DNA of 64,000 nt from Phaeosaccion multiseriatum (lineage: Eukaryota; Protista; Ochrophyta, other classes): the NCBI GenBank assembly GCA_965112735.1, contig OZ218951.1:1922001-1986000 (forward strand), written 5' to 3'. A program made the position numbers and the translations under genes. How positions within the stretch are numbered: the stretch's first letter is position 1; every line of letters begins with the position of its first letter. Under the pieces are notes generated by a model. That model did not search any database. It worked only from the letters and a program-made list of their open reading frames with translations, and was not told the origin of the DNA. This document shows positions 2,995 to 53,747 of this stretch, in pieces.

Positions 2995-6563
<3,569 letters not shown>

Positions 6564-10269: not shown

Positions 10270-10310
<41 letters not shown>

Positions 10311-10442
10311 CGCGTGTGTGTTTTCTTCTGTTAGGAGAGGACGCCAGCAGCTGGACAGTCACCTGTGATCGGTGCTATCGGGTGTATCTTCCCTCTCCCC
10401 TCCCCGTTACCAGCTCAATTCCATTCCCTCCTCCTCCTCCTC

Positions 10443-10478
<36 letters not shown>

Positions 10479-11840: not shown

Positions 11841-12219
11841 GTGGGTAGGTAGGTAGGTAGGTAGGTAGATATTTTTATACGGACTTGATCTGTTGTTAAT
11901 AATTTACAGATACTTACACCCAGATACTTACTAAAGGAGTGTTGGAAGGAGGGAGGGGAGGAAAAACCTCTGCCCTCTCCCTCTGCCCTTCCCCCTCGGC
12001 AAAAACCCTGGTACTACTGTACATGTAGGGCGGATTTCAAAAAAACTCAGTAAGTCAATGGGAGGTGTAGAGGGGGGGCCGCGGAGGCGAGAAAGAAGAG
12101 AAGAAAGGAAAAACGCTTCAGCAGCAGAGGACGAGAGGATTCTTCTGTCCCGAAGCTTGTTCTTCTGTTGCGGCTTCTCCCATCTTCCTCGTCTCTCCAA
12201 AGAGCTATCGCGGCGCTCT

Positions 12220-15527: not shown

Positions 15528-15941
15528 TCGGCCCTGGAAGAGGTTACAGTATTCGCCGACCATAATCAGTAATCAGGCCGGCTGGCGCCAATAATCAGTA
15601 ATCAGGCCGGCTAGCGCCCGTCATAATCAGTAATCAGGCCGGCTGGCGCCGGTCATAATCAGTAATCAGACCCGGCTGGCGCCGGCCATTATCAGTAATC
15701 AGGCCCGGCTGGCGCCAATAATCAGTAATCAGGCCGGCTAGCGCCCGTCATAATCAGTAATCAGGCCGGCTGGCGCCGGTCATAATCAGTAATCAGACCC
15801 GGCTGGCGCCGGCCATTATCAGTAATCAGGCCCGGCTGGCGCCATAATCAGTAATCAGGCCGGCTGGCGCCGGCAGTAATCAGTAATCAGGCCGGCTGCG
15901 CCGGCCGTAATCAGTAATCTGATAACCTCTTCCAGGGCCGA
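15528..15941. mobile_element. Nested 414-bp TIR element, 19-bp TIR, flanked by TCCCTC, filled with ~28-33-bp ATAATCAGTAATCAGGCCGGCTGGCGCC repeats
   Basis: TCGGCCCTGGAAGAGGTTA (15528-15546) and TAACCTCTTCCAGGGCCGA (15923-15941); same TCGG...CCGA termini as the outer element. Confidence 0.65.
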
Positions 15942-16487
15942 TCCCTCCCTCCCTCCCTCCCTCCCTCCCTCCCTCCCTCCCTCCCTCCCTCCCTCCCTCC
16001 CTCCCTCCCTCCCTCCCTCCCTCCCTCCCTCCCTCCCTCCCTCCCTCCCTCCCTCCCTCCCTCCCTCCCTCCCTCCCTCCCTCCCTCCCTCCCTCCCTCC
16101 CTCCCTCCCTCCCTCCCTCCCTCCCTCCCTCCCTCCCTCCCTCCCTCCCTCCCTCCCTCCCTCCCTCCCTCCCTCCCTCCCTCCCTCCCTCCCTCCCTCC
16201 CTCCCTCCCTCCCTCCCTCCCTCCCTCCCTCCCTCCCTCCCTCCCTCCCTCCCTCCCTCCCTCCCTCCCTCCCTCCCTCCCTCCCTCCCTCCCTCCCTCC
16301 CTCCCTCCCTCCCTCCCTCCCTCCCTCCCTCCCTCCCTCCCTCCCTCCCTCCCTCCCTCCCTCCCTCCCTCCCTCCCTCCCTCCCTCCCTCCCTCCCTCC
16401 CTCCCTCCCTCCCTCCCTCCCTCCCTCCCTCCCTCCCTCCCTCCCTCCCTCCCTCCCTCCCTCCCTCCCTCCCTCCCTCCCTCCCTC
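15942..16487. repeat. Long, essentially perfect (CCCT)n microsatellite inside the TIR element
   Basis: About 545 bp of uninterrupted CCCT; a shorter degenerate tract lies at 15305-15527. Confidence 0.95.
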
Positions 16488-17419
16488 TTCGACCCTGGAC
16501 AAGATTACGGTGTGCGCCGGCCGTAATCAGTAATCAGCCCCGGCTGGCGCATAATCAGTACTCAGGCCGGCTGGCGCCGGTCATAATCAGTAATCAGGCC
16601 GGCTGCGCCGGCCGTAATTACTAATCAGATAGGTCGAGGCCTAGGCCTAGAACCGCCGGCCTAGGGAGAAAAAATGGCCGGCCTAGAGCGGCCAACGGCC
16701 GCCGGCCTAGGCCTAGAGCGGGCGTAGGCCGCTCGGCCTAGGGCCTAGAGCATAGGCTTCTAGGCCAGTCTGGAGCCGAAATCCTCTCTCCCCCGCGCAC
16801 TGAAACGGAAACTGGTCGGTTGGACCGCGGATGCCGCCGGAAAATGGAACGCTGTTGTTGGATCGTTGTTGGAAATGGCCTGCTGGAAGATTTGGGACCT
16901 TTGTGGTTGGTGTGGTGTGGTTGGGTGGTGTGTTGTGGAGACGGAGTAGTACATGTACACAGCTGTGGGCAAACAATGCAATCGCTTCCGAGGCCAGGCA
17001 GCAGTGGACGCCGCCGTACTCCCCCCTCCCCCCCCCCTGATGGTGGCACTGCTGCAGTGCCCCATCGTGACGGGGTGGGAGGTCATCCATGTAGAGCAGT
17101 AGCGGCCATAGGCACTACTACCACCAGACCACCACCTCTTCAACCCCAGCTCCCCATTCTTGACGTTTCATGCCACGGAGGTAGTCGGGCGCCATCGTCG
17201 ATAGTAGCAGAAGCGAAGACCGTAGAGGCGGAAGAAGGCAGACGATTTACTACAATATCGCCAGTACACTCTGCGAGGGGGAGGGGAGATGGCAGAGGAG
17301 ACCGAACGCCACCTGCTGACGAGCACCGAACACCACCTGCTGCTGACTTCAACACACGGAAAAGTGTGGATGTGAAAGGAGAGGTTGGGGAGAGCAGCAT
17401 TGGCGAGAGTAGCACCAAT

Positions 17420-19939
17420 ATGGCGCGCAAGTACCGGCAGCTACTCACGTCAGAGAAGGCATTGAGACGCCTCCGCATCTTCTTCTTGCTGTTTGTGGGG
17501 TTAGTGGTTAGCCACTTTGTTGCGTTGGAGTACGCAAAATCTCTGGAGCGAGAGGAGATGACAGCCTACAGAGCCGACGTTGCCTCTCTTCAGGCCACAG
17601 TCTTCAATCAGCTCAAGTCTTCAGACGGCGAGAGCGAAATCATCCGGGCGGCCCTGCAGACGTGGGGTGATGGCGGCATCTCTGCGGCCCAATTCTCTGA
17701 TTTGACCGCCTCAGCCACGGCGGAAGGAAAGACTTATGCCTACACTGAGAGAGTGCATGCGGACGCTCGGTCTGAGTTCGAGACGGCGGCGTCGGCTTTT
17801 TACGGTCTAGACATTTACATCAAGGAGTTGTCTGCGGGAGGGTTCGTGCCTCGGGCCACACCTCCGGAGGGGAAGGACTATTGGCCAGTTCTTTACGTGG
17901 AACCGCGTAGAGTCGAAATCTTGGGCTTGGACAGTTTCTCCGAGAGCACCCGAAGAGCAGCAATTGAGCGCCTCCTACTCACAGGAGGAAGCACGTACTC
18001 GGCACCGCTGGCTGTGGCCGACACGGGAGAACCAACTTTAACTAGACTACTGCCCGTCAGAGGAGGGCCATCGGTGCTGCGCAGCTCATCATCAGCAGCA
18101 GATGGGTCCGGGGGGGGGGAGGGCGGTGAAATCACGGGGACGCTTGCACTTTTGATCAGGCCGGAGCTTGTTCTGGAGCAAAGCTCGTTGAAAAAGTTCC
18201 GGACCACCTACCCAGGCACTCAAGTAGATATTGGATTTCTCATGAGCGATGACTCGAGGGAGAGCCTGTGTGGGGTGCCATTTGCGGATGGCTCGGGTGC
18301 AGTGTCGTCCAAGACAATTTTCGGCTCCGAGAGAACTTCCGACGCCCTTGTGTCGTTCTATGTGGAAACGGCCACTGCCCCGCGGCGCCTCGAGAAGCGA
18401 GGCCTTCGGACGGAGTACTACGCTGTCATGGCGGGGGGCTGTGTCCTGCTTGCGCTGCTCTTCGTCTGGGAGCGCCGCACTTTGTTGCTCCAGGCCGCCA
18501 GATCCGAAGCAGCGGCCGCAAGAGAGGCTTCATCTGCCAAGTCGCGCTTCCTCCGCTCCATTTCGCACGAGATTCGCACGCCCATGAATGGCATCGTGGG
18601 AATGGCCCAACTACTTGAAAGCGTCGAGCTTCCCGATGAGGTGCTGCCCTGGATCAACGTGATACGCTCGTGCTCGTCCACCTTGCTCAGCTTGGTGAAC
18701 AACGTTCTCGACATGAGCAAAATCGAGGCGGGTAAGATGGAGATTAGCAAGAGGTCGTTCGCGCTTGACACGCTCGCGGTGGAGATGGTGGAGAGTGCTT
18801 GGGCCGTCCTCCATACAAGTAACACCTCGTCGCTCTCCAGCATGAGCCTCACCATCGGGAGCGGAGTGCCACGGGGTCGCGTGGTTGGCGACGACGTGCG
18901 GATCCGACAACTGTTCAACAACTTCCTCAGCAACGCCGCAAAGTTTACAAGGCGCGGTTCCATCGACCTCTTTCTGGACGGCACACAGACGAGCGGCGAG
19001 TCAGAGGAGGTGATGATTCTCCTCACTGTACGCGACACTGGCATCGGGATGGCACCTGACGCGGTCGAGCGCCTCTTCAAACCCTTTGTCCAGGTGCACG
19101 ACAGCGCAACTACCAACGTGCAGGGCACTGGCCTGGGGCTGGCCATCTCCGTCGCCCTTGCTCAGGCCATGGGGGGAGACGTGACCTGCTCGTCGGTGTT
19201 GGGAAAGGGGTCGGAGTTTCACTGCACCTTCAATGTGGAAGGCAAGCTTCGCAAGGCTACCACGGTGGCCCATCGGCGAGTGTACACGAGAGATGACGGT
19301 GTACGAGTGGAAGGAGAGCCACTCATCCCAGCCAGCACAGAGGACACATTCGACGGGTCGGAGACTAGCGCGACTCCGAGGGATGTGGAAGGAGGAGCAG
19401 TTGCTGCCGACAGGGGACTCATGGGGGAAGCTCCTCGTCCTCCCAGCGTGCTAGTGGTGGACGATAACAAGATCAATCGCATGGTGCTGAGTAAGCTGCT
19501 GGGCTCGCTGGGTGTGCTCGTGGAGAGTGCAGACACCGGCGTTACAGCAGTGGAGTCTTGCGGCCAGCAGCGCTTCTCTATCATCCTGCTGGACAGGGTC
19601 ATGCCCGTGATGGACGGCATTGGCGCCGCTCGAGAGCTGAGAGCTGGCGACGGCCCTTGCAAAGACACGCCCATCATCTTCCTCACTGCGGATTCCTCGG
19701 CGGAGGCCATGCGAGACTGTAAAGAGGCGGGCGGGAACGAATTCTCCACCAAACCTGTGCGGCGAGAGACCCTCGTCGAGAAGATGGCGGACCTTTTGCC
19801 CCCGCCCGAGCGCAGCTGGCTTTTGGACAAGGAGAGAGAGTTCTGCGAGTCGAGGAAGCAGGCCACCCACCTGCAAAGCATGGCGCGGAGAAGGGCAGAG
19901 GAGAGCAGCACGCGCAGCCGAGAAGAAGAAGGCGACTGA
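17420..19939 (+). CDS. Intronless membrane hybrid histidine kinase: TM - CHASE-like sensor - TM - HisKA - HATPase - receiver
   Basis: H-box 'FLRSISHEIRTPMNGIVGM', N-box 'RIRQLFNNFLSNAAKFT', G1 'VRDTGIGM', G2 'GTGLGLAIS', REC 'VLVVDDNKINR...LLDRVMPVMDG...PIIFLTA...KP'. CHASE-like 'YWPVLYVEP...LGLD...RRAAIER' lies between two hydrophobic helices. ATG 17420 is preferred over the TTG start at 16820. Confidence 0.92.
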   Translation: MARKYRQLLTSEKALRRLRIFFLLFVGLVVSHFVALEYAKSLEREEMTAYRADVASLQATVFNQLKSSDGESEIIRAALQTWGDGGISAAQFSDLTASATAEGKTYAYTERVHADARSEFETAASAFYGLDIYIKELSAGGFVPRATPPEGKDYWPVLYVEPRRVEILGLDSFSESTRRAAIERLLLTGGSTYSAPLAVADTGEPTLTRLLPVRGGPSVLRSSSSAADGSGGGEGGEITGTLALLIRPELVLEQSSLKKFRTTYPGTQVDIGFLMSDDSRESLCGVPFADGSGAVSSKTIFGSERTSDALVSFYVETATAPRRLEKRGLRTEYYAVMAGGCVLLALLFVWERRTLLLQAARSEAAAAREASSAKSRFLRSISHEIRTPMNGIVGMAQLLESVELPDEVLPWINVIRSCSSTLLSLVNNVLDMSKIEAGKMEISKRSFALDTLAVEMVESAWAVLHTSNTSSLSSMSLTIGSGVPRGRVVGDDVRIRQLFNNFLSNAAKFTRRGSIDLFLDGTQTSGESEEVMILLTVRDTGIGMAPDAVERLFKPFVQVHDSATTNVQGTGLGLAISVALAQAMGGDVTCSSVLGKGSEFHCTFNVEGKLRKATTVAHRRVYTRDDGVRVEGEPLIPASTEDTFDGSETSATPRDVEGGAVAADRGLMGEAPRPPSVLVVDDNKINRMVLSKLLGSLGVLVESADTGVTAVESCGQQRFSIILLDRVMPVMDGIGAARELRAGDGPCKDTPIIFLTADSSAEAMRDCKEAGGNEFSTKPVRRETLVEKMADLLPPPERSWLLDKEREFCESRKQATHLQSMARRRAEESSTRSREEEGD

Positions 19940-37300: not shown

Positions 37301-38674
37301 CTCATCCGTCGCTCACTTGGGCCGCGAGGTACCCCGCGCTGGTCTGCTGCGGCTCAAAGAGGACGGCGAGGGCGGGGCTGCTGCTCCATCCGTGCAGAAA
37401 GTCGATGGCCCGGATATTGCCCGTTACACCAAGGTCCTCAAGATCGATGAGGAAGGGCTTAGAGGCCAACCATCGCGCCCCTGCCGCTTTGGCTGCGCCG
37501 CTCTCCTCCGTCCACGCAGGCGCCGATCGGGCAGCCTCCTCTGCTGCTCCTGCTCCTGCTGCTGCTGCTGCTGGTGGTGGTGGTAGTGGTGGCTTCTCCT
37601 CATCCCCCTCCTTGTCTACTTCCATCACGTCCACCTCTCCGTCTCCTCCTCCTCTTGCTCCTCCAGAGGAAGCAGAAGCAGGAGGAGCAGTTGGTACTCC
37701 GTTAGTGCTGGGCTGCTGTTGGGCACCTTCCGCTCTCTCCCGCACCTCTCGACTGATAAATGTATCCACGGGAGCGTAGCGCACCATGGGTAGGATTGCG
37801 AGCCGGTAGCCGCCGTCAAGCACTGCGATGCATCGACCTGGAAACCACATGTCAGCGACGAATGGAGGAGCAGGAGAGAAGGCGTGGGGAAAGGATGAGG
37901 CAAGGATAGTTGGCTTAACGACGGGCTCCCCCCACACACAACGCAGCCAAGCAGCAGCAGGCGCAGCAGCAGCAGCAGCAGCAGCACCAGCCCCAAGGCC
38001 TTGCAGGCGAGAGCGAACAGGGAAGAAGAAAAACGAGTGTTGAAGCTCCTTCTCCCAGCTCTCTCAGAGACGCGAGAGCACCGCACGAGACCATTGCCCC
38101 CGATCTACCCATGGTTCGCCTTCTCTACTCTCCGTTCTCCCTCCCACCTACCCAAGGGGTCAGACGCCGACATGGAGGGAGGAAGGTCGTTCTGCGCGGA
38201 AGCCAGACCAAAGCTGCCCTCCTCCTCGTGCAGTGCCGCAGCTCCGCTCCCAGGACCCATCGCACCCGCCGCGAAGTTGTGGATGGAGATGTTGACGAGA
38301 CGGCTGAGCGTAGGGTCGTAGGCGACAATCGCAAGCTTGCTGCCCTCCATGGCCACCGCAATGCATCCAACAGGGCTAAGGCTGTTGCTAAGGCTGTTGC
38401 TATTACTGGCATCCCCGTCCCCCTTGCTCGTGGTTCGGACGAGGTGCAGGGCCATGATGCGGTTGTAGAGGGGGAATGCCCCCATCAACTCGAGGAAAGT
38501 ATCTTCTGTTCCGTCCTCGTCGTCCGCCTCCTGGTGTACGCGGTAAACCTCCAACACCGTGGCTTTGGCTACGGCAAGGTCGGTCGATCCAGGCCCCGTG
38601 ATGCTGCCAAACACCGCCGCATCCACCCCTGTGGGAGGATGCAGCTGCCGGTAGCAAGTGTAGATGCGAGACAT
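27253..38674 (-). CDS. CPSF1: Cleavage and polyadenylation specificity factor subunit 1 (CPSF160), multi-exon
   Basis: N-terminus '[10 protein letters not shown]'; 'DPLGRC', '[11 protein letters not shown]', '[12 protein letters not shown]', '[11 protein letters not shown]', 'GYGKSG'; C-terminal '[29 protein letters not shown]....GTNPRE....VLDGTVLWRF....[11 protein letters not shown]'. All match CPSF1 in order. Confidence 0.92.
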
Positions 38675-39173: not shown

Positions 39174-42100
39174 ATGAAGAAAAGTGGCCCAGCATCAGCA
39201 GCAGCCGCATTGCCCACATCCACTTCACCCCCCCCTTCCTTCCCGGGCGTTGATGATGGCTGCGAGGAGGCAAAGGACAGTGAGCCTCCCCTCGACGGCC
39301 TGCCGGTGCCTTCGCTGGACCTGGAAGCGTCGACACCCCTTGTCTTCAGCATGAGCCTCTTCAGCCCACCAAAGGACTGCCCTCGGCCCTTCGAGTTCTA
39401 CAAGAGGGGGGCGTGGCGCTTCGTGACGCGGATGCAACGGTAAGAGAGGGAGATCAGGGAGGGAGAAGGTCCCCTCTCCGTTTGAAGGCTGCCACACACG
39501 ACCCTACCCTGGCCTACCCTGCCCTACCCTACCCACATAACCTCTACCATACCCTATACCTCAGCCCTGCCCCCCCCCCCCCCCCTGCAGGCGCTGCCCC
39601 TCTTCCAAGTTCGTGCTCCACTTCGACGCCGACTCTGTCAGCGACGCCGAGCTGCGGGCGCTGTGGAGGGCGGCAGGGGGGCGCATCAAACTCCACTCTT
39701 ACGACATCGTTTGCAGCACAGGTTAGGTGGCGTGCTATTAAGCGATGGTCAGAGTGAGGGCAGCAGAGGAATGCTAACCCGGGAAAGGGAGAGATAGGGT
39801 TCTGTTTGCAAGGGGGCTTCCCTCCTCCCTTCCTCCCTCCTTCGTCTGTGCTGCGTTGTCGACTGACGCGCGTCCCATCGTGTCCCGTTCTCTCCTGCAT
39901 TCAATTCAGGGCTCGGTGCCATGGCGCAAGTATCGCACGTTCACGAGCTGCATCCACTGCCATCCGGACAGGGGCAGGAGACCTCCTCGTCCTCCACTGA
40001 CCCTTCTAAAGGTGCTGCCTCGGAGGAGCGAGGAGAGGCACTTGTGGGAGGCACTTTTCCGAAGAACTTCAAGGGCTTCGGCAGATGGTGAGGGGCACGG
40101 CAGCGGACAAGGAGGGAAGGAGGAAGAGAAAAAAGAGGGGGCGGGAGGGGAGGAGGAGAGCAAGAGACAAGAGATGAGAGGAAATAGAAGTTGTGGTGGC
40201 TTTTCTTTCTTTTTCTCGTATCTTGCCTCGAGCGTGCCATCTTCTCTCATCTCTTTCTCTCAATCTTGGCCCCTCGTTACTTCCCCCACCAATGATTTAT
40301 CAACCGATGAAACTGAACTGAACTGAAATGAATGAACACACAACGACGTTTGGCACGGAGAAGGGAGGGTCGCATTGTCAAGCACATCGGAGAGGCGAAC
40401 TCGGACTCAGAGGAAGAGTCAGAGGAAGAAGAGGGAGAGCGCAAAGGCAGCGAAGGTGTTGAGGGTAAGGCCAGGGCCAGCAGCCGTAAAGAGGGGTCCA
40501 CCGCCGCCACCATTACTCAACAGGAGGGTCAGCAGCTGCAGAAGCAGCAGCAGCCGCACCACTTGGCGCAAGCGGCAGCTTCAGCAGCAGCAGCGGCGGC
40601 GGTGGCAGCAGTGGGCACTGCCGAGAGTGGCGAGGAAGGGAAGGAGGAGGAGGATGAGGACGCGACAGGAGTAGCTGCCGCCGCTGTTGCGGCTGCCGCG
40701 GCTGCTGCTGCGGAAGGACCAGGCCACACGGCAGGGAGGAAGCGGAAGAAGGGTTGGGTATCGCCCCCCTCTACTCTGACGCTGCCCCAAGGGGCTCGAG
40801 ACAGTCGAGGCTCAGAGAGGGATAGAGCAGCAGATCAAGGGGCTGCGGTCTTGTCGGAGGAAGTGCACGCTTATTTGAAGGTACAGGAGGGAGGGGAAGG
40901 GAAAGGGATGGAAGCGGAGGCTTATGGGGGAGGGGAGGGGAGGGGAGGGGAGAGGCCAGAGAGAAGGGGGGAGGGAGGGAGGGAGGGAGAAGGAGGGAAG
41001 CGTTGTGTGTGGGGGTAGGGCAGGGAGGGGGTGGGGTGACGGCGATGGCCTGGTGCAGCAGCCTCGACATTCACACGTCGCTTTTCGCGTGTCGAAAGGG
41101 CGAGGGAGGGAGAGTGACAACTGCCGAGAGCTGGCGACGGCTGCCCTTTGGCTCCTGTTCGTACAACCAACTGACTTACTTCGTTCGCCCCTTGTTGACA
41201 TGTCAGTAGTTGTCCCTTTCTGCTACCACTCATGCTCTCTCTCTCTCACACACACACCCACACACGCACACACACACGCAAACACACGTGCGCACGTCCC
41301 TCCGACCAGCATGTGTTCGACTGCTCCATTTGGCCTACTCTGGAGTCTCGCGGCTGGAGAGAGGAGCCTGGGACCACCAGGGGCAGGGGCCATCGGAAAA
41401 ACACGTGAGTAACCGAGCGAGCGAGGTCAAGCGTGCACCAGGCCTCTGAGTATCCAGGGCCTCTGAATATCGAGGGCCTCTGACTATCGAGGGCCTCTGA
41501 GTGTCGAGGGCCTCTAAACATCGAGTGCCTCTGAATATCGAGGGCCTCTGAACATCGAGGGCCTTTCTGCTGCCTCTACTCTACTCTGCTCTGCACTGCT
41601 CTGTGGGTCTACTTTCTTCATCTGTCTTGTGCGTCCTCTCGATCTGTCTCTTCTTTCTGTCTCTTCTTTCTGTCTGTCTGCCTTGTCTGCTGTCTATCCA
41701 TCCGTACCACTAATCATCTGTCTATCTGTCTGTCTGTCGATCTGTAAATGAACATGCCATGTCCTTAATCTCTGACCTGGTCCGTCCTTCCCTCTCGCCT
41801 GTTGACTGTGCCTCGTCTTCACACCCTCCTCAGCAACTACTTTCCACCGGGTGTGAGCAAGGGTCCTGGCGTCTCGCGAAGGGTGCATTACTTTGATACG
41901 GTCAAAATGGTGCGTGCGTGCGTGCGTGCGTGTGCGTGTGCGTGTGCGTGTGTGTGTGCGTGTGCGTGTGCGTATGTGTGTGATTCTTGGTACATTTCAA
42001 CCCTCAGTATCCTTGCGAATGGTGCATGATCTTGTCACCGGAATCTGTCCACCGAGATACGGGCCCCGCCTGCTGTCGGGACTCTTACGAACAAGCCTTT

Positions 42101-45100
42101 CCTGCGTTGTGTTGACTTACGACTCTCTGATTGTGTCTACTTATAACTCTCTCTCTCTTCCCCTATCTCTCTCCACCTCTTCTCTTTGATTGTATTGCGG
42201 TCGCATTGCTTCATCATGACCTCTCTCTCCCTCTCTCTACGCTATCTCCTTGATCGTATGGCATTTACGTTCTTTCCTTACGACTCTCTCTCTGTGCACC
42301 GCTCCTTTTTGATGGCATGTGCATTGCGACCACAGACCATCGCTCACGTCATGACTCTCCCGGGGGGCGAGGAGCTCCTGACCAAGCAGGGGATAGAAGG
42401 CGGCTTCGCTAGCCTTGACGCTACGCATAATACGAAAGGGTGGGTACCACCAAATACCTTCGCCCCCAGGAAGAAGAGGGACAGATCGGTCGGTGGTAAG
42501 GGCCCTGTCTCGCCTAGCGGCATACGGGGGGTGAAGAAGAAAGAGGAAGAAGAAGAAGCAGAAGAAGGAGGAGGAGGGGGTGGGAAAGGGGAAGACACAG
42601 GGGAAGGCAAAGCGACGGCGAAAGAGGAAGACAAAGGGGAAGAGAACGAGAAAGGGGAAGGGGAAGAGGAGCAAGCGCAAGCGGCGGCGACGGACGCAGC
42701 AAGCGAGGCAGCAAGCGAGGCTGCAGCAACGCGAGGAGCTGAAGCAGCAATCGAGACAGCAACCGAGGCGGCAGCAGCAGCAGCAGCAGCAGCAGTGCCG
42801 CTAGGAGGAGGAGGAGGGGAAAAAAGAGGGCGCAAGAAGGGCTCAAAGCGGCCGCGGAAGAGCTGGTACGAGTCGGTACTGGTCCCTATCGAGCCGGTGG
42901 AGGAGCGACCGGAGGACTTGATTATAGAGAAGGACTCCCGGCCGCGAACTCCGCGCAAGGCTGCAGCCGCATGCAAAGCAGCAGCAGCCTCATCGGTGAG
43001 ACAGACGGCAGTGGAAGCAGCCAGAGCAGCCAAGTTGGTCAAGTATGCCAAGAAAGCAGCGGACAAGGCGGCGAAGGAAGCAGCGCTCGAGAAGAGTCGT
43101 GTGGAGCGATGGAGGGCCGCGCTGTGGCGACAGGAAGTGGAATGGATGGAGGGGCTGCCGGTGAAGCTGGCGGGGAGCTTTTGGAAGGCCGTGTGGCCGC
43201 GGATGGAAGCGGAGGGCTGGGACAAGGTGGAGAGCGAGGGCGAGGGGGAGGGGTGGGTCACCTTCTTAGGACCACTTCCTGCGCCGCTGCCAGCTGTTGA
43301 CGAAGCAGCAGCACCAGCAACAGCAGTCGTAGCTCAAGAAGCTGAAGAATCGGCAGCAGCAGCGGCAGCAGCAGCGGCAGCAGCAGCGGTAGCAGCCGGA
43401 GCAGCAGGAACAGCAGCAGCAGTAGCAGCAGGTGCCGCGGCAGCGGGGGAAGAAGGGCAGAAGTATGATGCGATTGAGCTGTCGTCGATGGATGCCGCGG
43501 CAGACCACCCTCCTTTGGGAAACGCCACGACTGGTACCACTGCTGCCGTTACCACCCCTGCTACTACAGATCGTCCTCTGGGTACTACTGCTACTACAGA
43601 TCGTCCTCTGGGTACTACTGCTACTACAGATCGTCCTCTGGGTACTACTGCTACTACTGGCGCCGGCAGCGAGACCAACAGCAGTGGTGCCACGAGCAGT
43701 AACGGTAGTAGCGAGGAGGCTGCTGGGGAGGCTGGAGACGATTCTACCCTTGCGTCTCCTTCCCCTCCGGTCCCTCGGGCCCCTCACTTGCGGCGTGCCG
43801 AGTGCGTCACCTTACAGGAACTGACGGACGCACTCACCTCCTCCTCCTCCTCCTCCTCCTCCTCCTCCTCCTCCTCCTCCTCCGTCTTGTTGGATGGCGG
43901 GCTTGGTGTTGACGGTGCAAGTGGGAGGTGTGGTGGGGATGTTGGTGATACAAGTGGGAGGGGTGGCAGGCGTGAGGCGGAGGAGCCCCCTCCTCGGCAG
44001 CGGCGGTGGGAGGAGGTGCTGGCCTCTGCGGGCTTCACGCCACAAGTGGTGAGAAGGACCCGCGAACAAGCCATTCGAGCGGCGGACGAGGAGTGTGGTT
44101 TCACCTGCGTTGGCGGTGTTGTGCAGCAGCTACAGCAGCAGCAGGGGGAGCAGGTGGTGATACAGCAGCAGAGGCAGCAGGAGGAGCAACACCCGCCTGG
44201 CAAACCGGGCGAGGGGACTGCAGAGAGAGACAGAGAAGAAGGAGAGAGAGAAGCAGCATTGGCAACGGCAGAGACAAAAGGAGCCGTAGGAGGCGAAGAG
44301 GAGGATGAGGAGGAGGAGGAGGTGGGAGGGGATGAGACGGCCCGGGATAGAGCGGAGTCATCAACGACCTTCGTGACCACAACCAGAACACCATCACCGC
44401 TAGCACCATCACCACTATCACCGCCACCACCACCACCACCACCACCACAACAACAACAACAACAACACCGACAAGAAGAAGAGCAAGTGCAGGAAGACAG
44501 AGTTGGAGTGGCAGAAAAAGTAACAGGAGAAAGAGAAGACGAGGGAATGGGAGAAAAAGAAGCGGCAACAGAGAGACCGAGAAAGATGGCCAAACCAGAG
44601 GACGAGCAGGGAGCCGCAGCAGCAGAAGAAGGAGAGCAAAAGGGTGGAGGAGATGGAGAAGGAGAAAAGCGGCAAGAAGTAGTACCAGCGAGTCCGACAA
44701 AGGTGGCTAGCTCTGATGGCGAGCAGGCGCTAGGGGGGGCGACAGTAGCAGCGGCAGCAGCCGCGGAAGAAGGCGGAGAGCAAGAAGGGGTGGGAGAGGG
44801 AGAAGAAGAAGAACAACAACAATATCATCAAGAAGAGGAAGAAGAAGCAACAGAGAGACCGAGAAAGATGGCCAGATCAGATACTGAGCAGGCATTGAGG
44901 GGAGCCGCGGCAGCAGCCGCTGCTGCAGCAGCTGCACAGGGCGGGGAAGAAGAGGGAGGAAGAGAGGGGGAAGGAGAAGAACGAGAAGAAGAGAGATCAG
45001 TTAGCGAGCAGCCCCTAGGGGGCGGTGAAGCAGCAGCAGCCGCAGCACGAAAAGGCGGAGACCAAGAGGGTGAGGGAGAAGTAGAAGGAGAAGGGGAAGG

Positions 45101-48100
45101 AGGGGGAGGAGGAGACGAAGAGGAAGCAGCAGCAGCGAGACCGAGAAAAATGGCCCGAACCGAAGGCGAACAACCATCAGGAGGGCCTGCGCTGACACCG
45201 GAGTCGGGAATGACAGTTTCAGAAGGAACAGGGCCAGGACTCACGTGCCGCCCCTTCTTCCCTTCACTCAAAGCCCCCTCAGCAGCAGCCACAGCAGTAG
45301 CAACCTCAGCTGCAGCCTCAGCAGGAGCCTCAGCAGGAGCAGCAGTTGGTGATGTAGCAGCAAGCACCGTGCCTCCAGCTGAGCAGTGCGATGCAACTGA
45401 GCTTGGGCAGGGCCAGGCTGAATCCCAAGCTGAACCCCAGGCTGAACCCCAGGATCACAATGAGGCTCAGGGTAGTGAGAAAGGGGGGCAGGTGCCACAG
45501 CCGCTGCAACAGGAGGAGCAGATGGGTGGAGGCGGAGAAGGTGGATATGTCAAGGAAAGCAGCAGCAGCAGCAGAAGCAGCAGCAGCAGCAAAATCGGCG
45601 AGAAGAGGGGGAAAGCGTCGAGAGGGCGAGGGAGAAAGCGGGAGCGCAGGGAGAGAGGCAGCAGTGTATCACCAAGTGGCGGTACTTGGGCTGGTGCTGG
45701 CGCTGGTGCTGGTATATGCCCCCCCCCTCCTCCTCCTCCTCCTCCTCCTCCTCCTCCTCCTCCTTCTCGGGGGAGGGGGCGGTCCGCACCTTCTCGAATG
45801 GCGAAGAGTGTTGCCGTAGCTAAACTAGGGGAGAGTAAGGAGACGGCATACAACAACGGCGACGACGAAGACGACCAACCGGTAGGGGGGCAGATGAGAG
45901 AGAAGAGGAATATGGCAGCGCATGAAGATGCATGGAGTGACGCGGACGACAACTACGTCTTTGTGAAGAACAGGAGCAAGGGCAAGACCAAGGAGGCCGC
46001 TGGGGACGATGAAAGGGAGGAGGAGGAGGAGGAGGAGGAGGAGGCGGAGGAGGAGGAGGAGCCCACCAAGCCACGTGGCGCCAAGAGAGGAAGGAAGGCA
46101 GGAAAAGGCGCTGCTGCTGCTGCTGCGGGCAACGCAAAGGCAAAGGCGAACACAGAAGAAGGGGCGGGGGCCTCAGTCGTTCTGCCAAGCCCGCCCACCA
46201 CTCCGCGGCGGAAACGGGGGAGGCCAACAAACGCGCAGCGTGCGCTGGACGCGATGGCTGCTGCTGCAGCTGCTACCGCCGCGGCTGCTGCGGCTGCTGC
46301 GACTGCAGGGAGGTCCAGCACACCAGCAGGAACTGCTGCTGCAGCCGTCGTTCCCAGCCCGAGTGAGGATACGCGAGGAGGCAACAAGAGGGGCCGCAAG
46401 TCAAATGCCGAGAGGGCGTTGCTGCTCAAGATCGGCCCGAGAATCCCGCATCGGAAGGGAGCTGCAGCAGCTGCGCGGCGGGCAGCAGCAAAAGCCTTAG
46501 CGGCAGCAACAGGTGGTGATACAACAGGTGGTGATACAACAGGTGGTGATACAGCAGGTGGTGATACACCAGGTGGTGATACAGCAGCCAAGGCTCACAC
46601 AAGAAGAGCCAAGGAAGCACCTACCCGAGTGGGCACTCGAATACGGGTGCAGGCTCGGCCGTCTACGCAAGCCCCAACCGCAAGTCCATTGACAGTAAGA
46701 GTAAGCTCGTCACCATTCTTCCCGCCAAAAGGAGAGGCAGCAGGAGCAGCAGCAGCAGCAGCAGCAGCAGCGTCAAAAGCAGGAGGAGTGTCACCAGTAG
46801 GGTCGTCTATGGCATCGCCCCTGGCATCACCACCGCGGAAGAGGGGCAGGCCACCAAAGAAGAGACAGATAGAAATCACGGAGAAGGAGAACACTGGTGG
46901 CAGTGGTGGTGGTGGTGGTGGTGGTGGTGATAGCAGCGGCAAGACTGGTGCTGAGGCGGATGGAGGGATACTGAGCAGTCGGGGCGTTGGCGGCAGAGGC
47001 AGCGGAGGGAGTAGCCGGGGCGGCGGTGCTGACAGCAGTGATGGTGGCAGGGGAGAGAAGAAGAAGAGAGGACCCGGCAGACCTCCAGGGCGACCAAAGA
47101 CAAAGGCGATGGGAAGCAGCGACGATACTGGGCTTGGCAGCATGCAGGAGAGAGTAGGGCCGGGGGTAAGCAGATGCAGCAGTACCAGTAGCACCGTGTC
47201 GGACGCCGAAGCCATACCCTTGCCATCACGAGGAGGAGGAAGAGGAGGACGAGGAGGGAGAGAAAGAGGCGGGGGAGGAGGAGGAAGAGGAGGAGGAGAG
47301 GGGAGGGGAAGGAAAGGAGGGCAGAAAAAGAACCACCACCACCAGCAGCAGCAGGATGAGGAGGAGGAGGAGGAGGAGGAGGACGAGGACGAGGTGGTGA
47401 TACGGCAGCAGCAGAGAGCACGCAGTCGCTTGGCGAGGGGGGGGGGGGGCTCATCCGCTGGCGCTAGTCAATCAAAAGCGCCAGACCAGGAGGTGCCTCG
47501 ACAGACAGCCATACGCACGGGCGGAGTGACGGATCCCACAGCAGGAGATGCGGAGAAGGGGAAGGGAAAGGAAGGGCGAAGGGGGAGGAGGAGTCAAGCA
47601 GAGTCCCAGTCCTCAGGAAGTGGGGGGGGTGGAGAAGGGGTCAAGGTTGAAGTCTCTCTCAACCAGGTCGGGTCAAGGAGGAGGAGGGCAGAAGCAACAA
47701 CTGCAGTTGGTGATACAGCGACGGGGGGGAGTACGGGTAGTGCGAGAAGAGAAGGAAGGGGGGCCGAGGTGGAAGGCAGCAGGGCACAGCGGGGACGGGT
47801 GGAGGAGGCGTCTACCACCGTTCTCGAAGGGAAGCGACAAGGACGGACAAGTGCTGCTGCGAGCAGAGCGTCACCAGCAACAACAGCCACCAGAGGGCAG
47901 GCCGCCGGACGAGCAGCCACCAGAGCAAGAGGAGGCAGACCGGCTGCAGCTTCGAAGGCCACTGCTGCTGCAACTCCTTCTACTGGTGGAGGTGTGAAAG
48001 GTCGTGCAAAGAGTGGCGTAAAGGGGGTTGGTGGAGGAGTCAAGCGCTTGTCTGCAGCGGAGGCTGCCCTGGAGGAGGACAAGGCCGACCTTTATCGATG

Positions 48101-49313
48101 TAGATATGCCAATGGTTTCGAGGAGGACATTAGTCTTTGGCAACTGCGGCAGTACGGTGTGCGCTTGCCTACATCGCTGCCTTCATCGGGTGCTGCATCG
48201 TCGTCATCGGCTGAGGACGTGTCAGGGGCGGAAGGAAGACGACAGGGGGAGGGGAAGAGGATCGAGAGGGAGGGAGCTGTAAAAAGTACAGAAGAAGAAG
48301 AAGAAGAAGAAGAAGGAGGAGGAGGAGGAGCAGGAGCAGGAAGAGGAGGAGGAGGAGGCGATAGTGGGGCTATTGCGAAAGCCAAGGAGGTTGGTCCTTC
48401 GCCGACGCCGCCAGCTGTAGCAGCCGTGCAAAAGGCCCCCTCCTCGAGCAGAGTGAAGACAGAGCCGCAAGTAGGGGAGAGGGACGGGGTGTGGAGTGAG
48501 GGAGTGCTCTTCCCCCAGACCAAGGCCCTCACCAAACCCGGTGCTCGATGGATTATTGGAGCCATGAGGTGTGTGTATCTATCTATGTATGTGTGTGCAT
48601 GTGTTGTATGTGTGTGCGTATGTGTGTGTAATCTGTATATGTGTATTTTGTGTGTATTTGTATATGTGTGTGCATGTGGTACGTAGGTGTGTAAACGTGT
48701 GTGTTGTGTGTTTGGTCCCCCGTGCTTCCCTGGTCTCTCTGCTTTCCAAGGGTACTCCTCGCCGGGCCCCTCAACGTACCCCCCCCCTCTCTCTCTTGTT
48801 TCCCCCCTCCTCTCCCTCCATGTCTTTCTCTCTCTCTGCGTGTGTGTGTCTCCCTCCCTCCCTCCCTCCCTCCCTCCCTCCCTCCCTCCCCTCCCCCTCC
48901 TCCTCCCTTCCAGACTCACCACCCTCTGGGCCCACCGCGGGCGTGAAACCGTCGTAGTCGCCGACGTCCACCACGATCCTGACCTCTTCTGCTCCGAACT
49001 CGCGTGCCTCCTGCACGATATGCGGTGTCAGGACAAGGAGGTGGGCGTGACTTACTGGCGCTCGGCGGAGAGGGGATGCATGAATCGTTGCGCCTTGGAC
49101 AGGGAGGTGCTTATGAATAATCACAGCGGCCGTGCAGGCACAGAGGTAAGTGGTAGCGGATGGCAGTGGACGGTAGTGTCGTAAAGAGCGTGGGATGGAG
49201 CGGGGCAGTGCGGGGGAGGGGGTTCAGGGCCAGAGGCCAAGGGATCAGAGGGTTGAGATGACTTGCTGCTGCTCAGCTGCAAAAGATGGGACAAGCTGAG
49301 CCCAGCGACGCTA

Positions 49314-49363
<50 letters not shown>

Positions 49364-50352
49364 CTCTCATTCCTCTCTGCTCCCTCTCTCTCCCCGCCTC
49401 CTCTCTCTCTTCACCCCCCCCCCCCTCCCCTCCCGCTCTCTCCTCCCCCCATCTCTCCCTCTCACTCTTGCATATCCGCAGGCGGTGCTGTGGGAAGAGG
49501 GAGGGCACTTCCACTCAGACACAGGCCTTGTGGTGTGGAAGCCCGGCAAGGCTCGACAAGAGGCCAAAACCCTCGGCGACTTCGCTCTGCATTGCTGCGG
49601 TGCCGCACTCGGTGAGACCCCGTAGGACCCATCCGCAACTGCTTCCCTCCCTCCCCTCCCCTCCCCTTCCCTCCCTCCCCTCCCCTCCCCTCCCCTCCCC
49701 TTCCCTCCCCTTCCCTCCCCTCCCCTCCCCTCCCCTTCCCTCCCCTTCCCTTCCTTTTCCTTCCCTTCCCTTCCCTTCCCTTCCCTTCCCTTCCCTTCCC
49801 TTCCCTTCCCTTCCCTTCCCTTCCCTTCCCTTCCCTTCCCTTCCCTTCCCTTCCCTTCCCTTCCCTACCTTCCCTTCCCTTCCCTTCCCTGCCTTCTCTT
49901 CCCTTCCCTTCCCTCCCTTCCCTTCCCTTCCTCCCCTCCTTTCTTTTCCGTTTCCCTCGCCCAGTCGGATCGACATCAACCTCTTGAAGTTGTTTCGGGG
50001 TCTCTCCATCCTTTTCCTTTGCTCCTCTCTTACTTACCCAACGCGTCTTGTCTACGTGTGTACGTTTGCACGTGTGTGCGTGTGTGTGTGCGTGTGTGCG
50101 TGTGTGCGTGTATGCGTATCGTGTGTGTGTTCCCGTGTTGCCTCCTCTTTGTGGCCATCAGCGGCGAGCGCCATCCCCCGGGGGTGCAGCGAGATGCTCT
50201 TTGACGGCTTTCTCAAAGAGTCCGACATATTAGCGCGCCACGCCGTGTTTCGACCTCACAGGCATCACCTTGAGCCCACGGTCGCACGCTACCTCTCCTT
50301 CACAGAACAGCCTGTGCAGCAGCAGTTGGTGGTACAACAGTCGGTGGTAGAG

Positions 50353-50383
<31 letters not shown>

Positions 50384-51867
50384 TACAAGGGAAGAAGGTG
50401 GTGGAGGATGTTGAGGACGAGGAGGAAGAGGTAGGGGGAAAGCAGCACCAAAGAGAGGGCGAGAAGAAGTCGCAGTCGACGACAAGTCCTCCCGTAGGGC
50501 GGCGGCCGCTGCAAGGGGGAGACTCCTTGGGAGACTTGGGAGGTGTAAATTGGGGCTACTCCCTGCTGGAGAGCCTCGACGCCGCAGCCATACTCGCGGG
50601 GGCGAAAAGGAACATCGACGTACGTGCCTACCTTTCGTGACTTACTGCGCTGGTTGTGACGTACCCACTGGTGTGCGCGGAATAGCAGGGGTTTTTGGTT
50701 GAAAGGGAGGGGGGGAGCGAAGAGAGTGAAATGCATCTGCTGTACGTGTACTCTCTACTCTTCCCCGGTGATACGAATGTAGAGGTCATCGATTTTTCCT
50801 CCCCCACTCCCTCGTTCTTTGGCTGGCCTCCCTCTACCATATTCCTCCTGTTGGATGAACCCGTTCCTGTGCCTTTTGGCCCCCCTCCCCCTCTCCTTCC
50901 TCCTCCGTCCCCCTCTCGCCTCTCTCCTCCTTCCCCCCCCCCCCCCCCCCGCTCCTCCCTCCTTGCCGACCTCCTCCTTCCTCCCTCCCCAGCTCAAAGT
51001 GTGCAAAATGCAGCTTGAGGTCGGTGGACAAGGCGTGTACGGCGAGCAACTCTACGTCTGTCGGGAGGCGAGGTGAGTGGGGGAGTGAGTGCGTGAGTGA
51101 GGGAGTGAGTGCGTGAGTGAGGGAGTGTGATTGGGTGAGTGAGTGAGTGAGTGAGTGAATGAGTAGTGAGTGAGTAGTGAGTGGATGTGTGGGTGGGTGG
51201 GTGAGTGAGCGCGTGAGTGGATGAGGGAATGAGTGTGTGGGTGGGTGAGTGAGTGAGTGAGTACGCTGAGTGAGTGAGTGAGTGAGTGAGTGGGTGAGTG
51301 AGTGAGTGTGCGTGTGGGTGAGTGAGTGAGTGAGTGTGCCTGTGAGTGGGTGAGTGAGAGTGTGATGAATGAGTGAGTGAGTGGGTGGGTGAGTGGGTGA
51401 GTGAGTGAGTGAAGTGACTGATTGAGTGATTGAGTGAGTGCGTGAGTGAGTGGGTGATTGGAGGCGGGAGGGAATAACTGAGGTGGAGAGACATGCGCAA
51501 AATAGAGTCAAGCCCATTCAGCGCCACTAGCATCGAGGAGAGCCTGGGGTTAGCCTTTAGCAGCATTAGCAATTAGCAGCATATTGGGTTAGCCTTTAGC
51601 AGCATCAGCAATTAGCAGCATATGGGGTTTGCAAATAGCAACATACGACTCTCCGGAAGCTAACGAAAGTCTCGTCGGCTGATGATACAACGCGTGTGGT
51701 TGCGTGCGTGTGTGTGTGTGTCTCCCCCTGTGTGTGTGTGTGTGTGTGTGTGTGTTCAGGCCTGCCGGCGAGCAGTGGCTGGGGGCTCCCAAGGGAACCG
51801 TCAAGGAAGATGTGTGGTTTGAGGAAGACTCCGCCTACGAACGGCAGAGCGACAAGCAACAGGAGGG

Positions 51868-51900
<33 letters not shown>

Positions 51901-53304
51901 GCACAAGGAGGAGGAGGAGGAGGAGGAGAAGCGAAAGCTGGAGGGCAAGGAAAACATCAAAGCCCTTGGAGAAGGGCAGACGCATCATAGCACACCGCCC
52001 GTCGCTCTCGGCAAGGAGGGAATCGTGGAGATGAAGGGGGCAGAGGGAGCAGGGGGAGTCTTTCAGGACGACAATGAGGGCGGCGCAGGCCGAGCAGCAG
52101 CCGACGGTTGTGCCTCCTCCGACCTTCAAGACAAGGAGGAGAGAGAAGTGGGCCCGGCGGGGCAGGAGGAGGATTCGATGAAGGAGGAGAAGGCAGCCGA
52201 GGCAGTCGCGGCAGCAGCAGCGCCAGCGGCGGTAGGAGCGGAACACAAAAATGGCGAGCCCCCGTGTGTGGGAGGAGGCGATTCGCATACGGAAGGTCCT
52301 CGCAGACAGAAGGAGGTGGTCAATTCCGCTGAAGAGAACAGCACCCCCACCACCACCCCCACCACCACCACCATCAATAGCAACAGCAAGAGCAATAGCA
52401 ATAGCAATGGCAGCAGTGGCAGGGGCGTTGTACGACGCCGGAGAGAGCGCGACAGTGTATGCCGTGTGTGCCAGCAACGGGCGATGGGCGGTGGCGGCAG
52501 CAGCGGCAGCAGCAGCAGCAGCCCTGCGCCATCGAAGGTACCGGGGGGGGTGCGGGGAGGAGACGGCAAGGAGGAGGTCGAGGGGGGGGAGGAGGGTCTC
52601 CGAATGGAGGGGGATGATACAGCCCAACCTCTCTTGAGCAGGCCCACCTGGGGCTTAGATCGTGTCGTGTCATGTGCGGCGTGCCCTTCGGTGTACCACC
52701 CTGCTTGTCTGCGGCCCCGCCCCGCCTTCCTCTACGATGTTTCCAGGTGAGGGGTGTGTGTGTATCACCAACTGCTTCTGCTACTTATTTTTGCTGCTGC
52801 TGCTGCTCTCTCTCCCTAGGCCTGGCCTTACTCCATAACCTCCCCTCGCTTTGCTCGAAGTTGATAGAAACGGCCTTCCTTCCTTCCTTGCTTGCTTTTC
52901 TTCATTCCCTTTCCTTCCTTCCTCCTCCCTCCCTCCCCTTCCTTCCTTCCTTCCTTCCTTCCTTCCTTCCTTCCTTCCTTCCTTCCTTCCTTCCTTCCTT
53001 CCTTCCTTCCTTCCCTCCTCCCTTCCTCGCTTTCTCTAGGGCACCTGTGGAGGGATGGCGCTGTTCCACCTGCATTAGCAAGGGCAGAGAGATCATCAGT
53101 GCAAAGGCAGGGGGGGACACTCCTGCACAAGGGCACCGAGGAGGCGGAGGAGGCGGAGGGGGGGGGGGGGAGGGAGAAGGAGGAGGGGAAGATGACGTGG
53201 AAGGGGCGACGGGCGCGGCAAGGCTGATGGAGGCGCTGAGGAGGGTGAAGATGCGCGTCATCAGGGTGGACACGCATCGCTCCATCCACTTTGCGAATCC
53301 ATGA
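39174..53304 (+). CDS. Giant (~3,215 aa) chromatin-associated protein: split GT-A-like domain, split PTM/DIR17-type Tudor, AT-hooks, C-terminal PHD finger (13 exons: 39174-39439, 39591-39721, 39910-40087, 40364-40880, 41310-41404, 41834-41909, 42336-48568, 48914-49145, 49482-49611, 50162-50619, 50993-51072, 51760-52746, 53040-53304)
   Basis: All 12 GT-AG junctions are phase-compatible by manual count. PHD 'CRVC...SCAAC.SVYHPACL...WRCSTC'; AT-hook-like 'KRGRPT', 'RKRGRPPKK', 'GRPPGRPK'. The acceptor at 40363 (AAG) is weak. Confidence 0.65.
41447..41565. repeat. 17-bp intronic minisatellite (GAGGGCCTCTGAATATC-like, about 7 copies)
   Basis: Directly visible tandem units with substitutions. Confidence 0.85.
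51073..51460. repeat. (GTGA)n expansion starting at a 5' splice site
   Basis: Reiterated GTGAGT directly after the donor at 51073. Confidence 0.85.
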
Positions 53305-53560
53305 CATCCATGACATCCATGACAGCAGCGGCCAGGACAATTTCAGGTCGGTAATTTTTGTTGTTCTTGCTGTTTTCGTGCCGTTATTGTTCATAATCTT
53401 TCTCATGCAACGGCGCCGAAGTGCATCTGTCTAATGGACTTGCCGACAGCGCATATCACCATCACACATCACAGGCCTAACAACTCTCTCCCCGCTTCCG
53501 TCTTCCTCCTCCCCTCTTCCCTACCCCCCCCCCCCCCCCCCCCCTCCCTCTCTCACTCAG

Positions 53561-53747
53561 CATGGAACACCCCGAGCAATTCGTGGACTCCATGCCGAAA
53601 CGCCGTATCATCCCCCCAGCAGAAGTGGCGGAGTCCGTCTTTTGGCTCTGCACCTCCCCCGCAGGCAGGATCTTTCACGGAGCGGTCTTGGACGCCTCTC
53701 AGGGCCTCACCGTCCGGCCCGGCTTGGTGACGGAGGGGCACGGCTGA
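53561..53747 (+). pseudogene. Orphan terminal exon of a short-chain dehydrogenase/reductase
   Basis: 'PKRRIIPPAEVAESVFWLCTSPAGRIFHGAVLDASQG' matches the SDR C-terminal pattern (P.GR...PEEVA..V.FL.S......G..L..DGG). It is preceded by a polypyrimidine tract and CAG. No upstream SDR exons are visible. Confidence 0.6.

Follow-up and report, generated by a model that had tools for sequence, protein, structure and literature searches.

Here, we describe a gene on the forward strand of a 64,000-nucleotide stretch of the ochrophyte Phaeosaccion multiseriatum (GenBank assembly GCA_965112735.1, contig OZ218951.1, positions 1,922,001 to 1,986,000), hereafter called the window and numbered from its first letter. 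The genome from which the window is taken is GC-rich (about 0.59), eukaryotic and intron-bearing. Between positions 39174 and 53304, a phase-consistent in-frame model was rebuilt which starts with an ATG at 39174, ends with a stop codon at 53302-53304 and joins 11 exons (E1 to E11) into 3,158 codons with no internal stop; all introns are of the GT-AG type. An earlier note on this DNA, made from the letters and a list of open reading frames (ORFs), had proposed a phase-consistent gene of 13 exons. The multi-exon structure, its phase and the approximate start, stop and residue numbering agree with that reading, and the number of exons is corrected to 11. The deduced protein carries a domain of the GT-A fold, termed X in the following, which is divided into two parts by a very long insert containing a Tudor-like domain, and a PHD finger is located downstream of X.

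The relationship between the two parts of X was established with homologous proteins. An exhaustive protein search with E6 (77 amino acids) detected 13 homologues with E-values between 8e-13 and 6e-4, and a profile search added another five (18 in total). In P0002, P0003, P0009, P0011, P0013 and P0014, the counterparts of both window segments adjoin and constitute one domain of approximately 280 residues. A profile hidden Markov model (HMM) of X was built exclusively from homologues with contiguous X and then run on the spliced window protein. It gave two matches, one of profile positions 6-80 on residues 52-129 (nucleotides 39327-39711, 40.6 bits) and one of positions 81-275 on residues 2430-2742 (nucleotides 48531-51072, 156.9 bits), which follow each other collinearly and meet at profile position 80/81. 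Judged by these alignments, the two window segments form one domain with a similarity far beyond chance. The contiguous homologues and the two abutting matches thereby bear out the earlier note, which had read an N-terminal and a distant segment as a single domain; its distant segment is present but was drawn too short, as it really continues into E9 (50993-51072). Window X shares 29-43% identity with its homologues over 160-283 aligned residues. Two assignments of our own made by eye, E6-E7 as a BAH domain and E2 as the start of a BRCT domain, were dropped, the homologues and the structure model having given a GT-A fold.

Other sequence searches were largely silent. No match came from word-index protein searches, for which E6 and the conserved part of E5 served as queries, from a metagenome scan with E6, or from protein-atlas feature searches with E6 and with residues 150-400 of E5. 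Among PDB sequences, E1 and the family profile found nothing and E6 found one chance-level match (E 1.3). No sequence relative of X was detected in phage genomes by tblastn, and the X domains of eight homologues matched no Pfam family of any kind at E<=10. In pieces of the window, weak Pfam matches to PHD, DUF7650, DUF7141 and, on exon 2, DUF7011 (E 0.012) were obtained.

The fold was tested on a homologue, the contiguous X of Amorphochlora amoebiformis (P0014, residues 368-650), which is 29% identical to window X and collinear with it in the HMM. AlphaFold2, supplied with an alignment of 20 rows, returned a model with a pLDDT of 91.5 and a pTM of 0.90, in which the elements follow the order β1-α1-β2-α2-β3-α3-β4-α4-β5 and onwards. 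A Foldseek comparison of this model with the PDB gave 135 matches at E<=1e-3, all of which have the nucleotide-diphospho-sugar transferase fold; the list is led by nucleotidyltransferases and also includes COLGALT1, B3GNT2 and LgtC. A wide search was performed with VIA-align, a structural aligner independent of Foldseek. Here, six of the eight top ranks are taken by neighbours from the GT8 clan, namely UGGT (GT24; Z 12.1, 221 aligned residues), LgtC (GT8; Z 11.9), LARGE1 (Z 11.6), WbbM (Z 11.5), glycogenin (Z 11.2) and the GT8 entry 3tzt, and the best nucleotidyltransferase is GlmU (Z 10.8). GT-A proteins, viral clusters included, were also returned from the predicted-structure libraries BFVD and ESM Atlas. 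Thus, the GT-A fold that the earlier note had assigned by eye is confirmed on the homologue model, and we consider this fold, together with the split architecture, highly probable for the window protein. At the level of sequence, X constitutes a new family; its fold is GT-A, and the GT8 group is its nearest neighbour. As a side observation, the three ESM Atlas structures nearest to the X model are viral clusters, two from tailed phages and one from giant viruses (TM 0.57-0.71).

In the P0014 model, β3 comprises residues 71-77 and α3 residues 85-98. Since the break in the window (profile 80/81) falls between these elements, the insert sits in a surface loop. A second model was computed for P0008, a relative in which the nested arrangement is encoded by a single ORF; its input was alignment A5, in which α2-β3 of the homologues are misplaced. 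The overall pLDDT is 51, with the N-terminal part (X_N, residues 25-105) and the C-terminal part (X_C, residues 438-490) of X being moderately confident. Nearly all of the 50 best structural matches of this model are proteins of the GT-A fold. The alignments comprise 120-140 residues taken from the model range 23-508 and cover approximately the first 150 residues of the targets at 3.5-4.5 Å, with Z up to 8.4. As alignments of this length need both halves, these pack as one Rossmann-like subdomain in the model, a result which is supportive of co-folding, not independent evidence for it.

An insert of approximately 2,300 residues, which holds the Tudor-like domain, interrupts the X of the window in the β3-α3 loop. 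Between the two parts of X, the order is the Tudor N-half, then about 2,080 residues of low complexity with a DUF7650-like motif and three AT-hooks, and then the Tudor C-half (Table 1). A Tudor HMM built from four contiguous homologue Tudors selects residues 178-197 and 2276-2303 in collinear order, and the Tudor-like domain of the window is likely to be split in its β2-β3 loop by these 2,080 residues. Inserts of 20-85 residues are present in the corresponding loop of P0003 and P0009. In alignments, the C-half matches the beginnings of P0001, P0005 and P0012 and residues 363-401 of P0008; its piece of the window has a weak match to DUF7141 (E 0.0066), and P0012 has a weak match to PF21743, the PTM/DIR17-like Tudor family (E 0.008). 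The Tudor regions of the P0008 model are of low confidence.

Apart from the weak match to DUF7650 (PF24662), no Pfam family was found in the low-complexity insert. The DUF7650 score in the window (20.2 bits) lies under the gathering cut-off of 27, whereas the orthologue P0008 reaches 40.2 bits, so that the copy in the window has probably diverged. Three sites show an R-G-R-P core with basic flanks and were assigned as AT-hooks by this motif. In the PHD finger, the C4HC3 set of eight Cys/His ligands is complete, and loop 1 contains a 67-residue insert. Because an intron splits the finger, the E10 piece scores just below the PF00628 cut-off of 24 (22.7 bits, E 1e-4), and the orthologue P0001 scores 32.4 bits. 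The earlier note had pictured a fusion of a glycosyltransferase domain with Tudor, AT-hooks and PHD; these modules were found, but the GT-A domain encloses the readers and is not simply fused to them, and the Tudor-like domain is itself split.

The purine skew of E5 is strong and its in-frame repeats are numerous, among them a perfect 30-bp unit present 3.3 times at 43558-43657; the exon looks like a fast-expanding low-complexity insert with a codon usage of its own. A consensus-like donor, AGG/GTAAGG (40464/40465), is located after the Tudor N-half and an acceptor of the same phase, TGTCTGCAG/C (48057/48058), before the Tudor C-half; splicing between them would, hypothetically, yield a short isoform that lacks the 2,000-residue insert and in which the Tudor is nearly intact. 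The corresponding splice from donor 40464/GT to acceptor AG/48058, which would remove the insert from the Tudor, was not adopted in the gene model, as this insert holds the DUF7650 motif conserved in relatives.

Table 1. Coordinates of the gene, its exons and the features of the encoded protein in the window
Feature	Position (nt)	Residues	Strand	Basis and remarks
Whole gene	39174..53304		+	11 exons, 3,158 codons plus stop; GT-AG, frame, homology across several junctions
E1	39174-39439		+	
E2	39591-39721		+	
E3	39910-40087		+	
E4	40364-40880		+	
E5	42336-48568		+	
E6	48914-49145		+	
E7	49482-49611		+	
E8	50162-50619		+	
E9	50993-51072		+	
E10	51760-52746		+	
E11	53040-53304		+	
X, N-part (β1-α1-β2-α2-β3)	39327..39711	52-129	+	HMM; intron 39440-39590 inside; elements taken from the P0014 model
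Tudor-like domain, N-half	40044..40379	178-197	+	VGGTFPKNFKGFGRW/EGRIV; intron 40088-40363 inside (E3/E4); HMM, profile 5-24
Low-complexity insert, about 2,080 residues	40380..48068		+	rest of E4, intron, most of E5; Ala/Gly/Glu-rich
DUF7650-like motif	43173..43232	644-663	+	FWKAVWPRMEAEGW; PF24662, E 6e-4, 20.2 bits over 20 residues
AT-hook core RKRGRPT	46209..46229	1656-1662	+	motif scan
AT-hook core RKRGRPP	46836..46856	1865-1871	+	motif scan
AT-hook-like KRGPGRPPGRPK	47064..47099	1941-1952	+	motif scan
Tudor-like domain, C-half	48069..48152	2276-2303	+	DLYRCRYANGFEEDISLWQL; HMM, profile 28-55
X, C-part (α3 to the YVC end)	48531..51072	2430-2742	+	HMM; spans the E5 tail, E6, E7, E8 and E9
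D-V-H-H-D	48963..48977	2459-2463	+	right after β4, at the topological place of the GT-A DxD
H-F-H-S-D	49506..49520	2528-2532	+	family HxHxD motif at the start of β6, kept in the window
GCSEMLFD and PHRHH	50182..50268	2570-2577 and 2594-2598	+	family G.DE.L.D and PHxHx
PHD finger	52460..53073		+	C2976, C2979, C3047, C3050, H3055, C3058, C3079, C3082; intron 52747-53039

The nested order recurs in relatives. On L001, a metagenome contig of 3.6 kb, X_N, the Tudor N-half, two copies of DUF7650, the Tudor C-half and the start of X_C are encoded in one ORF of 508 codons (P0008). The rest of X, the PHD finger and the tail follow as in the window, separated from this ORF by a short gap that is probably an intron. 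A second contig (L002, 1.8 kb) harbors one ORF with the Tudor C-half, X_C, the PHD finger and a stop, and its 5′ end is open. In Ectocarpus siliculosus, the gene Esi_0007_0057 (P0005; CBN73787.1, UniRef D8LS03) is annotated as a 'PHD-type domain-containing protein' of 518 amino acids. It is an orthologue of the 3′ half of the window gene and possesses the Tudor C-half, the C-part of X, the PHD finger and the C-terminal tail; in contrast to the window, its D-x-H reads S-I-H and PHxH is lost, and only the PHD finger is recognised in the annotation. Upstream of it on the same strand (L006, FN649731.1, 3,003,930-3,032,537), we found β2-β3 of X_N at nucleotides 1321-1443 (a weak match with 8.9 bits, E 0.015), a clear Tudor N-half motif at 2135-2206 and FWKDVWP, the DUF7650 motif, at 4662. 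Two genes are annotated within nucleotides 1-18608 of this region: an upstream model of 722 amino acids, which holds X_N, the Tudor N-half and DUF7650, and Esi_0007_0057, which begins inside the Tudor C-half. Ectocarpus therefore likely carries the nested gene in the order of the window, with the annotation apparently cutting one gene in two. Ochrophyte orthologues with matching domain order had been called for in the earlier note, and the Ectocarpus locus is such a case. By these sequence comparisons, the nested order is conserved in L001 and in Ectocarpus.

In the clade with contiguous X, the domain is located behind a Tudor-like domain and accompanied by UBA (P0009, in front of X) or Chromo (P0002). 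P0014 has Chromo and UBA matches under the cut-off and a Tudor-like segment before X. A PHD finger is the partner in P0001 and P0005, and all partner domains that could be recognised are readers of chromatin or ubiquitin. The Amorphochlora protein P0014 corresponds to GAB5354897.1, and an MMETSP transcript of it exists (P0034), so the contiguous clade is expressed. Altogether, family X was found in Ectocarpus, in the chlorarachniophyte Amorphochlora, in an MMETSP transcriptome and in several environmental eukaryote sequences.

Based on this architecture, we lean towards the view that the window gene encodes a chromatin-anchored nuclear GT-A enzyme of about 3,158 residues with nested domains and putative sugar transfer activity; targeting to chromatin is the part of this proposal that we hold to be quite probable. 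The protein would be built like a Russian doll, with X (about 280 residues) as the outer layer, a Tudor-like barrel in a loop of X as the middle layer and the low-complexity insert as the inner one. The two halves of X would re-associate across the insert. The AT-hooks may bind AT-rich DNA, the Tudor-like domain and the PHD finger may read histone marks, and together they would hold X on chromatin. There, a metal site of the type D-x-H...H would activate a nucleotide-sugar, and the sugar would be transferred to a hydroxyl of a chromatin component. We infer the nuclear location, the metal site, the catalytic activity, the donor and the acceptor. A chromatin protein is judged the likelier acceptor because proteins or glycans are the substrates of the enzymes with the closest structures and no hydroxymethyl-base pathway turned up (linkage to an oxygenase was not searched for); a modified DNA base would be less likely but possible.

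The putative catalytic motifs were analyzed in alignment A1, which comprises 12 rows and leaves out the window and L001. After β4, the family motif is [DS][VI][HY]D[DE], the fourth position of which is an Asp in 12 of 12 rows. Invariant or nearly invariant in A1 are furthermore the His-Asp of D-x-H-D, a Trp, a Cys, a Leu-Pro and both His of HxHxD; an acidic G.DE.L.D helix and PHxHxI are conserved across a wider motif alignment. In the P0014 model, D-x-H-D occupies residues 109-112, directly after strand β4 (104-108). The strand TVVVADV, which the earlier note had described as ending in a degenerate DxD, corresponds to β4 and is followed by this family-wide motif. D-x-H variants of DxD bind Mn2+ in GalNAc-transferases. 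The window retains D2459, H2461, H2528, H2530, D2532, E2573, H2595 and H2597, i.e. D-V-H-H-D and a P-H-R-H-H with both His kept, and is the best-preserved member of its PHD-bearing, split clade in terms of motifs.

Several observations weigh against this proposal as a whole. The exon pieces and ORFs of the window matched no glycosyltransferase family in Pfam with E up to 10. Z values of 11-12 and TM values of 0.4-0.6 show a fold and not a function, and nucleotidyltransferases of the same fold lie only about one Z unit lower and lead the Foldseek list. The putative metal site, composed of D-x-H after β4 and the C-terminal His, would be equivalent to DxD by topology. The P0008 model is of low confidence, and its input alignment included contiguous homologues. 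The two Tudor matches, though collinear, have weak scores of -1.4 bits (N-half) and 2.4 bits (C-half). RNA support for the gene was sought in public runs, and the four runs with the locus (X6-X9) all proved to be DNA, as their contigs run collinear through the introns. Finally, the motifs themselves are eroded: in the window, the A1-invariant Asp is replaced by His and the Asp of G.DE by Ser; L001 reads KVSMP at the site of D-x-H-D and has lost PHxH; P0001 (SIYDD) and Ectocarpus (SIHDD) have both lost PHxH and the Asp of HxHxD. The caution of the earlier note that the domain may be inactive is justified by this pattern in the clade of the window. We narrowly favour a glycosyltransferase for family X as a whole and regard activity of the window's own copy as slightly doubtful.

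The same erosion can be read in another way, namely that the GT-A domain of the PHD-bearing split clade is a pseudo-enzyme, a structural or ligand-binding module in a reader scaffold that serves, for example, as a nucleotide-sugar sensor or a protein-docking surface. The contiguous clade keeps D-x-H-D, PHxH and all other motifs strictly, so the losses are specific to the clade of the window. However, the eight residues retained in the window speak against this reading, and P0012, which begins in the Tudor C-half directly before X_C and is, by its sequence, probably nested in layout as well, has every motif. Moreover, the whole fold is conserved at the identities given above, which suggests selection on more than a surface. 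We regard a pseudo-enzyme as a rather unlikely explanation that nevertheless deserves attention.

Less probable by far is that X belongs to another group of enzymes with the same fold, such as nucleotidyltransferases of the IspD, RmlA or GlmU type, and acts on chromatin by producing or transferring a nucleotide-linked group. The top Foldseek matches are indeed IspD (4kt7, E 1.4e-5), GDP-mannose pyrophosphorylase, RmlA, GlmU and KdsB, IspD also leads the list for the half-domain of P0008 (Z 8.4), and in VIA-align GlmU comes within about 1-2 Z units of the best matches. In contrast, the seven best full-domain matches in VIA-align are all glycosyltransferases and cover more residues (up to 221-223), and the C-terminal half of the model, where the two branches differ, aligns to GT8/GT24 proteins out to residue ~250. 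Sugar-phosphate nucleotidyltransferases carry a glycine-rich G-x-G-T-R loop after β1, whereas β1 of X is followed by FS[FL][AS]LF.

The gene model is backed at several points. The junctions E5/E6, E7/E8 and E10/E11 are bridged without gaps by alignment to the uninterrupted ORF of a relative (L002/P0001), and the join of E8 and E9 is supported since the conserved YVC end of X falls in E9. E5 is a single exon of 2,078 codons within an uninterrupted ORF of 2,166 codons (42186-48686). The DNA sequence of the locus is confirmed by four public DNA runs with 0 differences; apparent splice joints in the runs X6-X9 are artefacts of 21-letter repeats. A division into two or more genes or transcripts, with the N-terminal exons separate from the giant ORF and the 3′ exons and the N-part of X a relic, would accommodate the lack of RNA among the covering runs, the two gene models in Ectocarpus, the poor pyrimidine tract of the E4 acceptor, the junctions E2/E3 and E4/E5, which are without homology support, and the third-position GC content of E5 (0.51 vs 0.70-0.84 in E1, E2 and E6-E8, the coding type here), but is very improbable given that the 508-codon ORF of L001 runs uninterrupted from X_N into X_C, that each half of X by itself is an incomplete fold, that the N-part is conserved and of coding-type composition, that all exons are phase-compatible without a stop and that the L002 ORF is still open upstream of the Tudor C-half.

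Long microsatellites make up most of three introns, namely (CTTCC)x59 at 49642-49931, (GTGA)x97 at 51073-51457 and (CCTT)x38 at 52874-53027. A divergent ORF on the reverse strand (38105-38674) begins ~500 bp before the gene. The N-terminus of its product resembles, by eye, that of the CPSF160/DDB1 β-propeller family, and a short bidirectional promoter region would serve both genes. Directly downstream of the stop codon, short ORFs on the forward strand (53434-53747) resemble, by eye, the C-terminal portion of a short-chain dehydrogenase and probably belong to the next gene.

To our knowledge, glycosylation is no established chromatin-writing chemistry beyond O-GlcNAc transferase, which is a GT-B enzyme, and kinetoplastid base J. 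It is a tentative and rather unlikely thought that X represents an unrecognised family of chromatin-targeted glycosyltransferases which write sugar marks in brown-lineage algae, a chlorarachniophyte and further eukaryotes. If this were true, sugars would be placed on histones, chromatin proteins or modified bases at sites set by Tudor, PHD, chromo or UBA readers, and X would represent an epigenetic reader-writer enzyme of a new type, with the readers, in the present case, inserted into the fold of the enzyme itself. Family X provides a testable candidate for chromatin sugar marks across much of the eukaryotic tree. In addition, a likely error in the Ectocarpus reference annotation is flagged, one gene apparently being represented by two models. 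The gene is also an extreme case of a domain within a domain within a domain: the halves of the enzyme are 2,300 and those of the Tudor 2,080 residues apart, and domain-scanning pipelines miss both.

Among known systems, the best structural matches of X are retaining enzymes of GT8 and GT24, namely LgtC, glycogenin, the xylosyltransferase domain of LARGE1 and the catalytic domain of UGGT (Z 11.2-12.1, 196-223 aligned residues, 4.3-4.9 Å). GT8 enzymes such as LgtC and glycogenin are marked by the motifs DxD, NSG/NAG, DQD and HxxGxxKPW. X shares with them the order of elements, with a putative metal-type motif at the end of β4, a strand at the place of NSG/NAG, an acidic helix at the place of DQD and a C-terminal His region. 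In contrast, identity to GT8/GT24 is only 10-12%, no match to the GT8 profile PF01501 was obtained with E up to 10, and the GT8 signature is absent, as X has D-x-H-D and PHxHxI[R] where GT8 has DxD and HxxGxxKPW; neither a uridine motif of the D.NY type after β1 nor HxxGxxKPW itself was seen in X. The GT8-like reading of the earlier note hence holds for the closest structures and fails for the profile and the signature motifs. The substrates of known GT8/GT24 enzymes are glycans or the enzymes themselves, and the sites of action are the secretory pathway, the cytosol or the periplasm; we know of no such enzyme that is joined to chromatin readers.

The base-J glucosyltransferase (JGT) glucosylates 5-hydroxymethyluracil in DNA. 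Together with GREB1 and the glycosyltransferases associated with TET/JBP, it offers a precedent for GT-A domains with nuclear or cytoplasmic regulators or DNA bases as their targets. GREB1 has been reported to O-GlcNAcylate ERα (PMC7968844). The Pfam search revealed no sequence relation of X to these families, the coverage of which in Pfam is uncertain, and, unlike in X proteins, Tudor, PHD or chromo readers do not form the framework of their members. GREB1 and the base-J glucosyltransferase are functional precedents, not relatives. In a limited library of literature, nothing was found on family X, on glycosyltransferases linked to Tudor, PHD or chromo domains, or on Esi_0007_0057.

With plant Tudor domains of the PTM/DIR17 type and with PHD-finger reader proteins, the window protein may share the Tudor motif pattern, to judge by the weak PF21743 match of the homologue P0012; it also has a C4HC3 PHD finger and AT-hooks. 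It differs from them in that the readers lie inside an enzyme fold, the Tudor-like domain has an insert of ~2,080 residues in a loop and the PHD finger has one of 67 residues. Known is the GT-A fold; new are the sequence family, its exclusive pairing with chromatin readers and the triple nesting.

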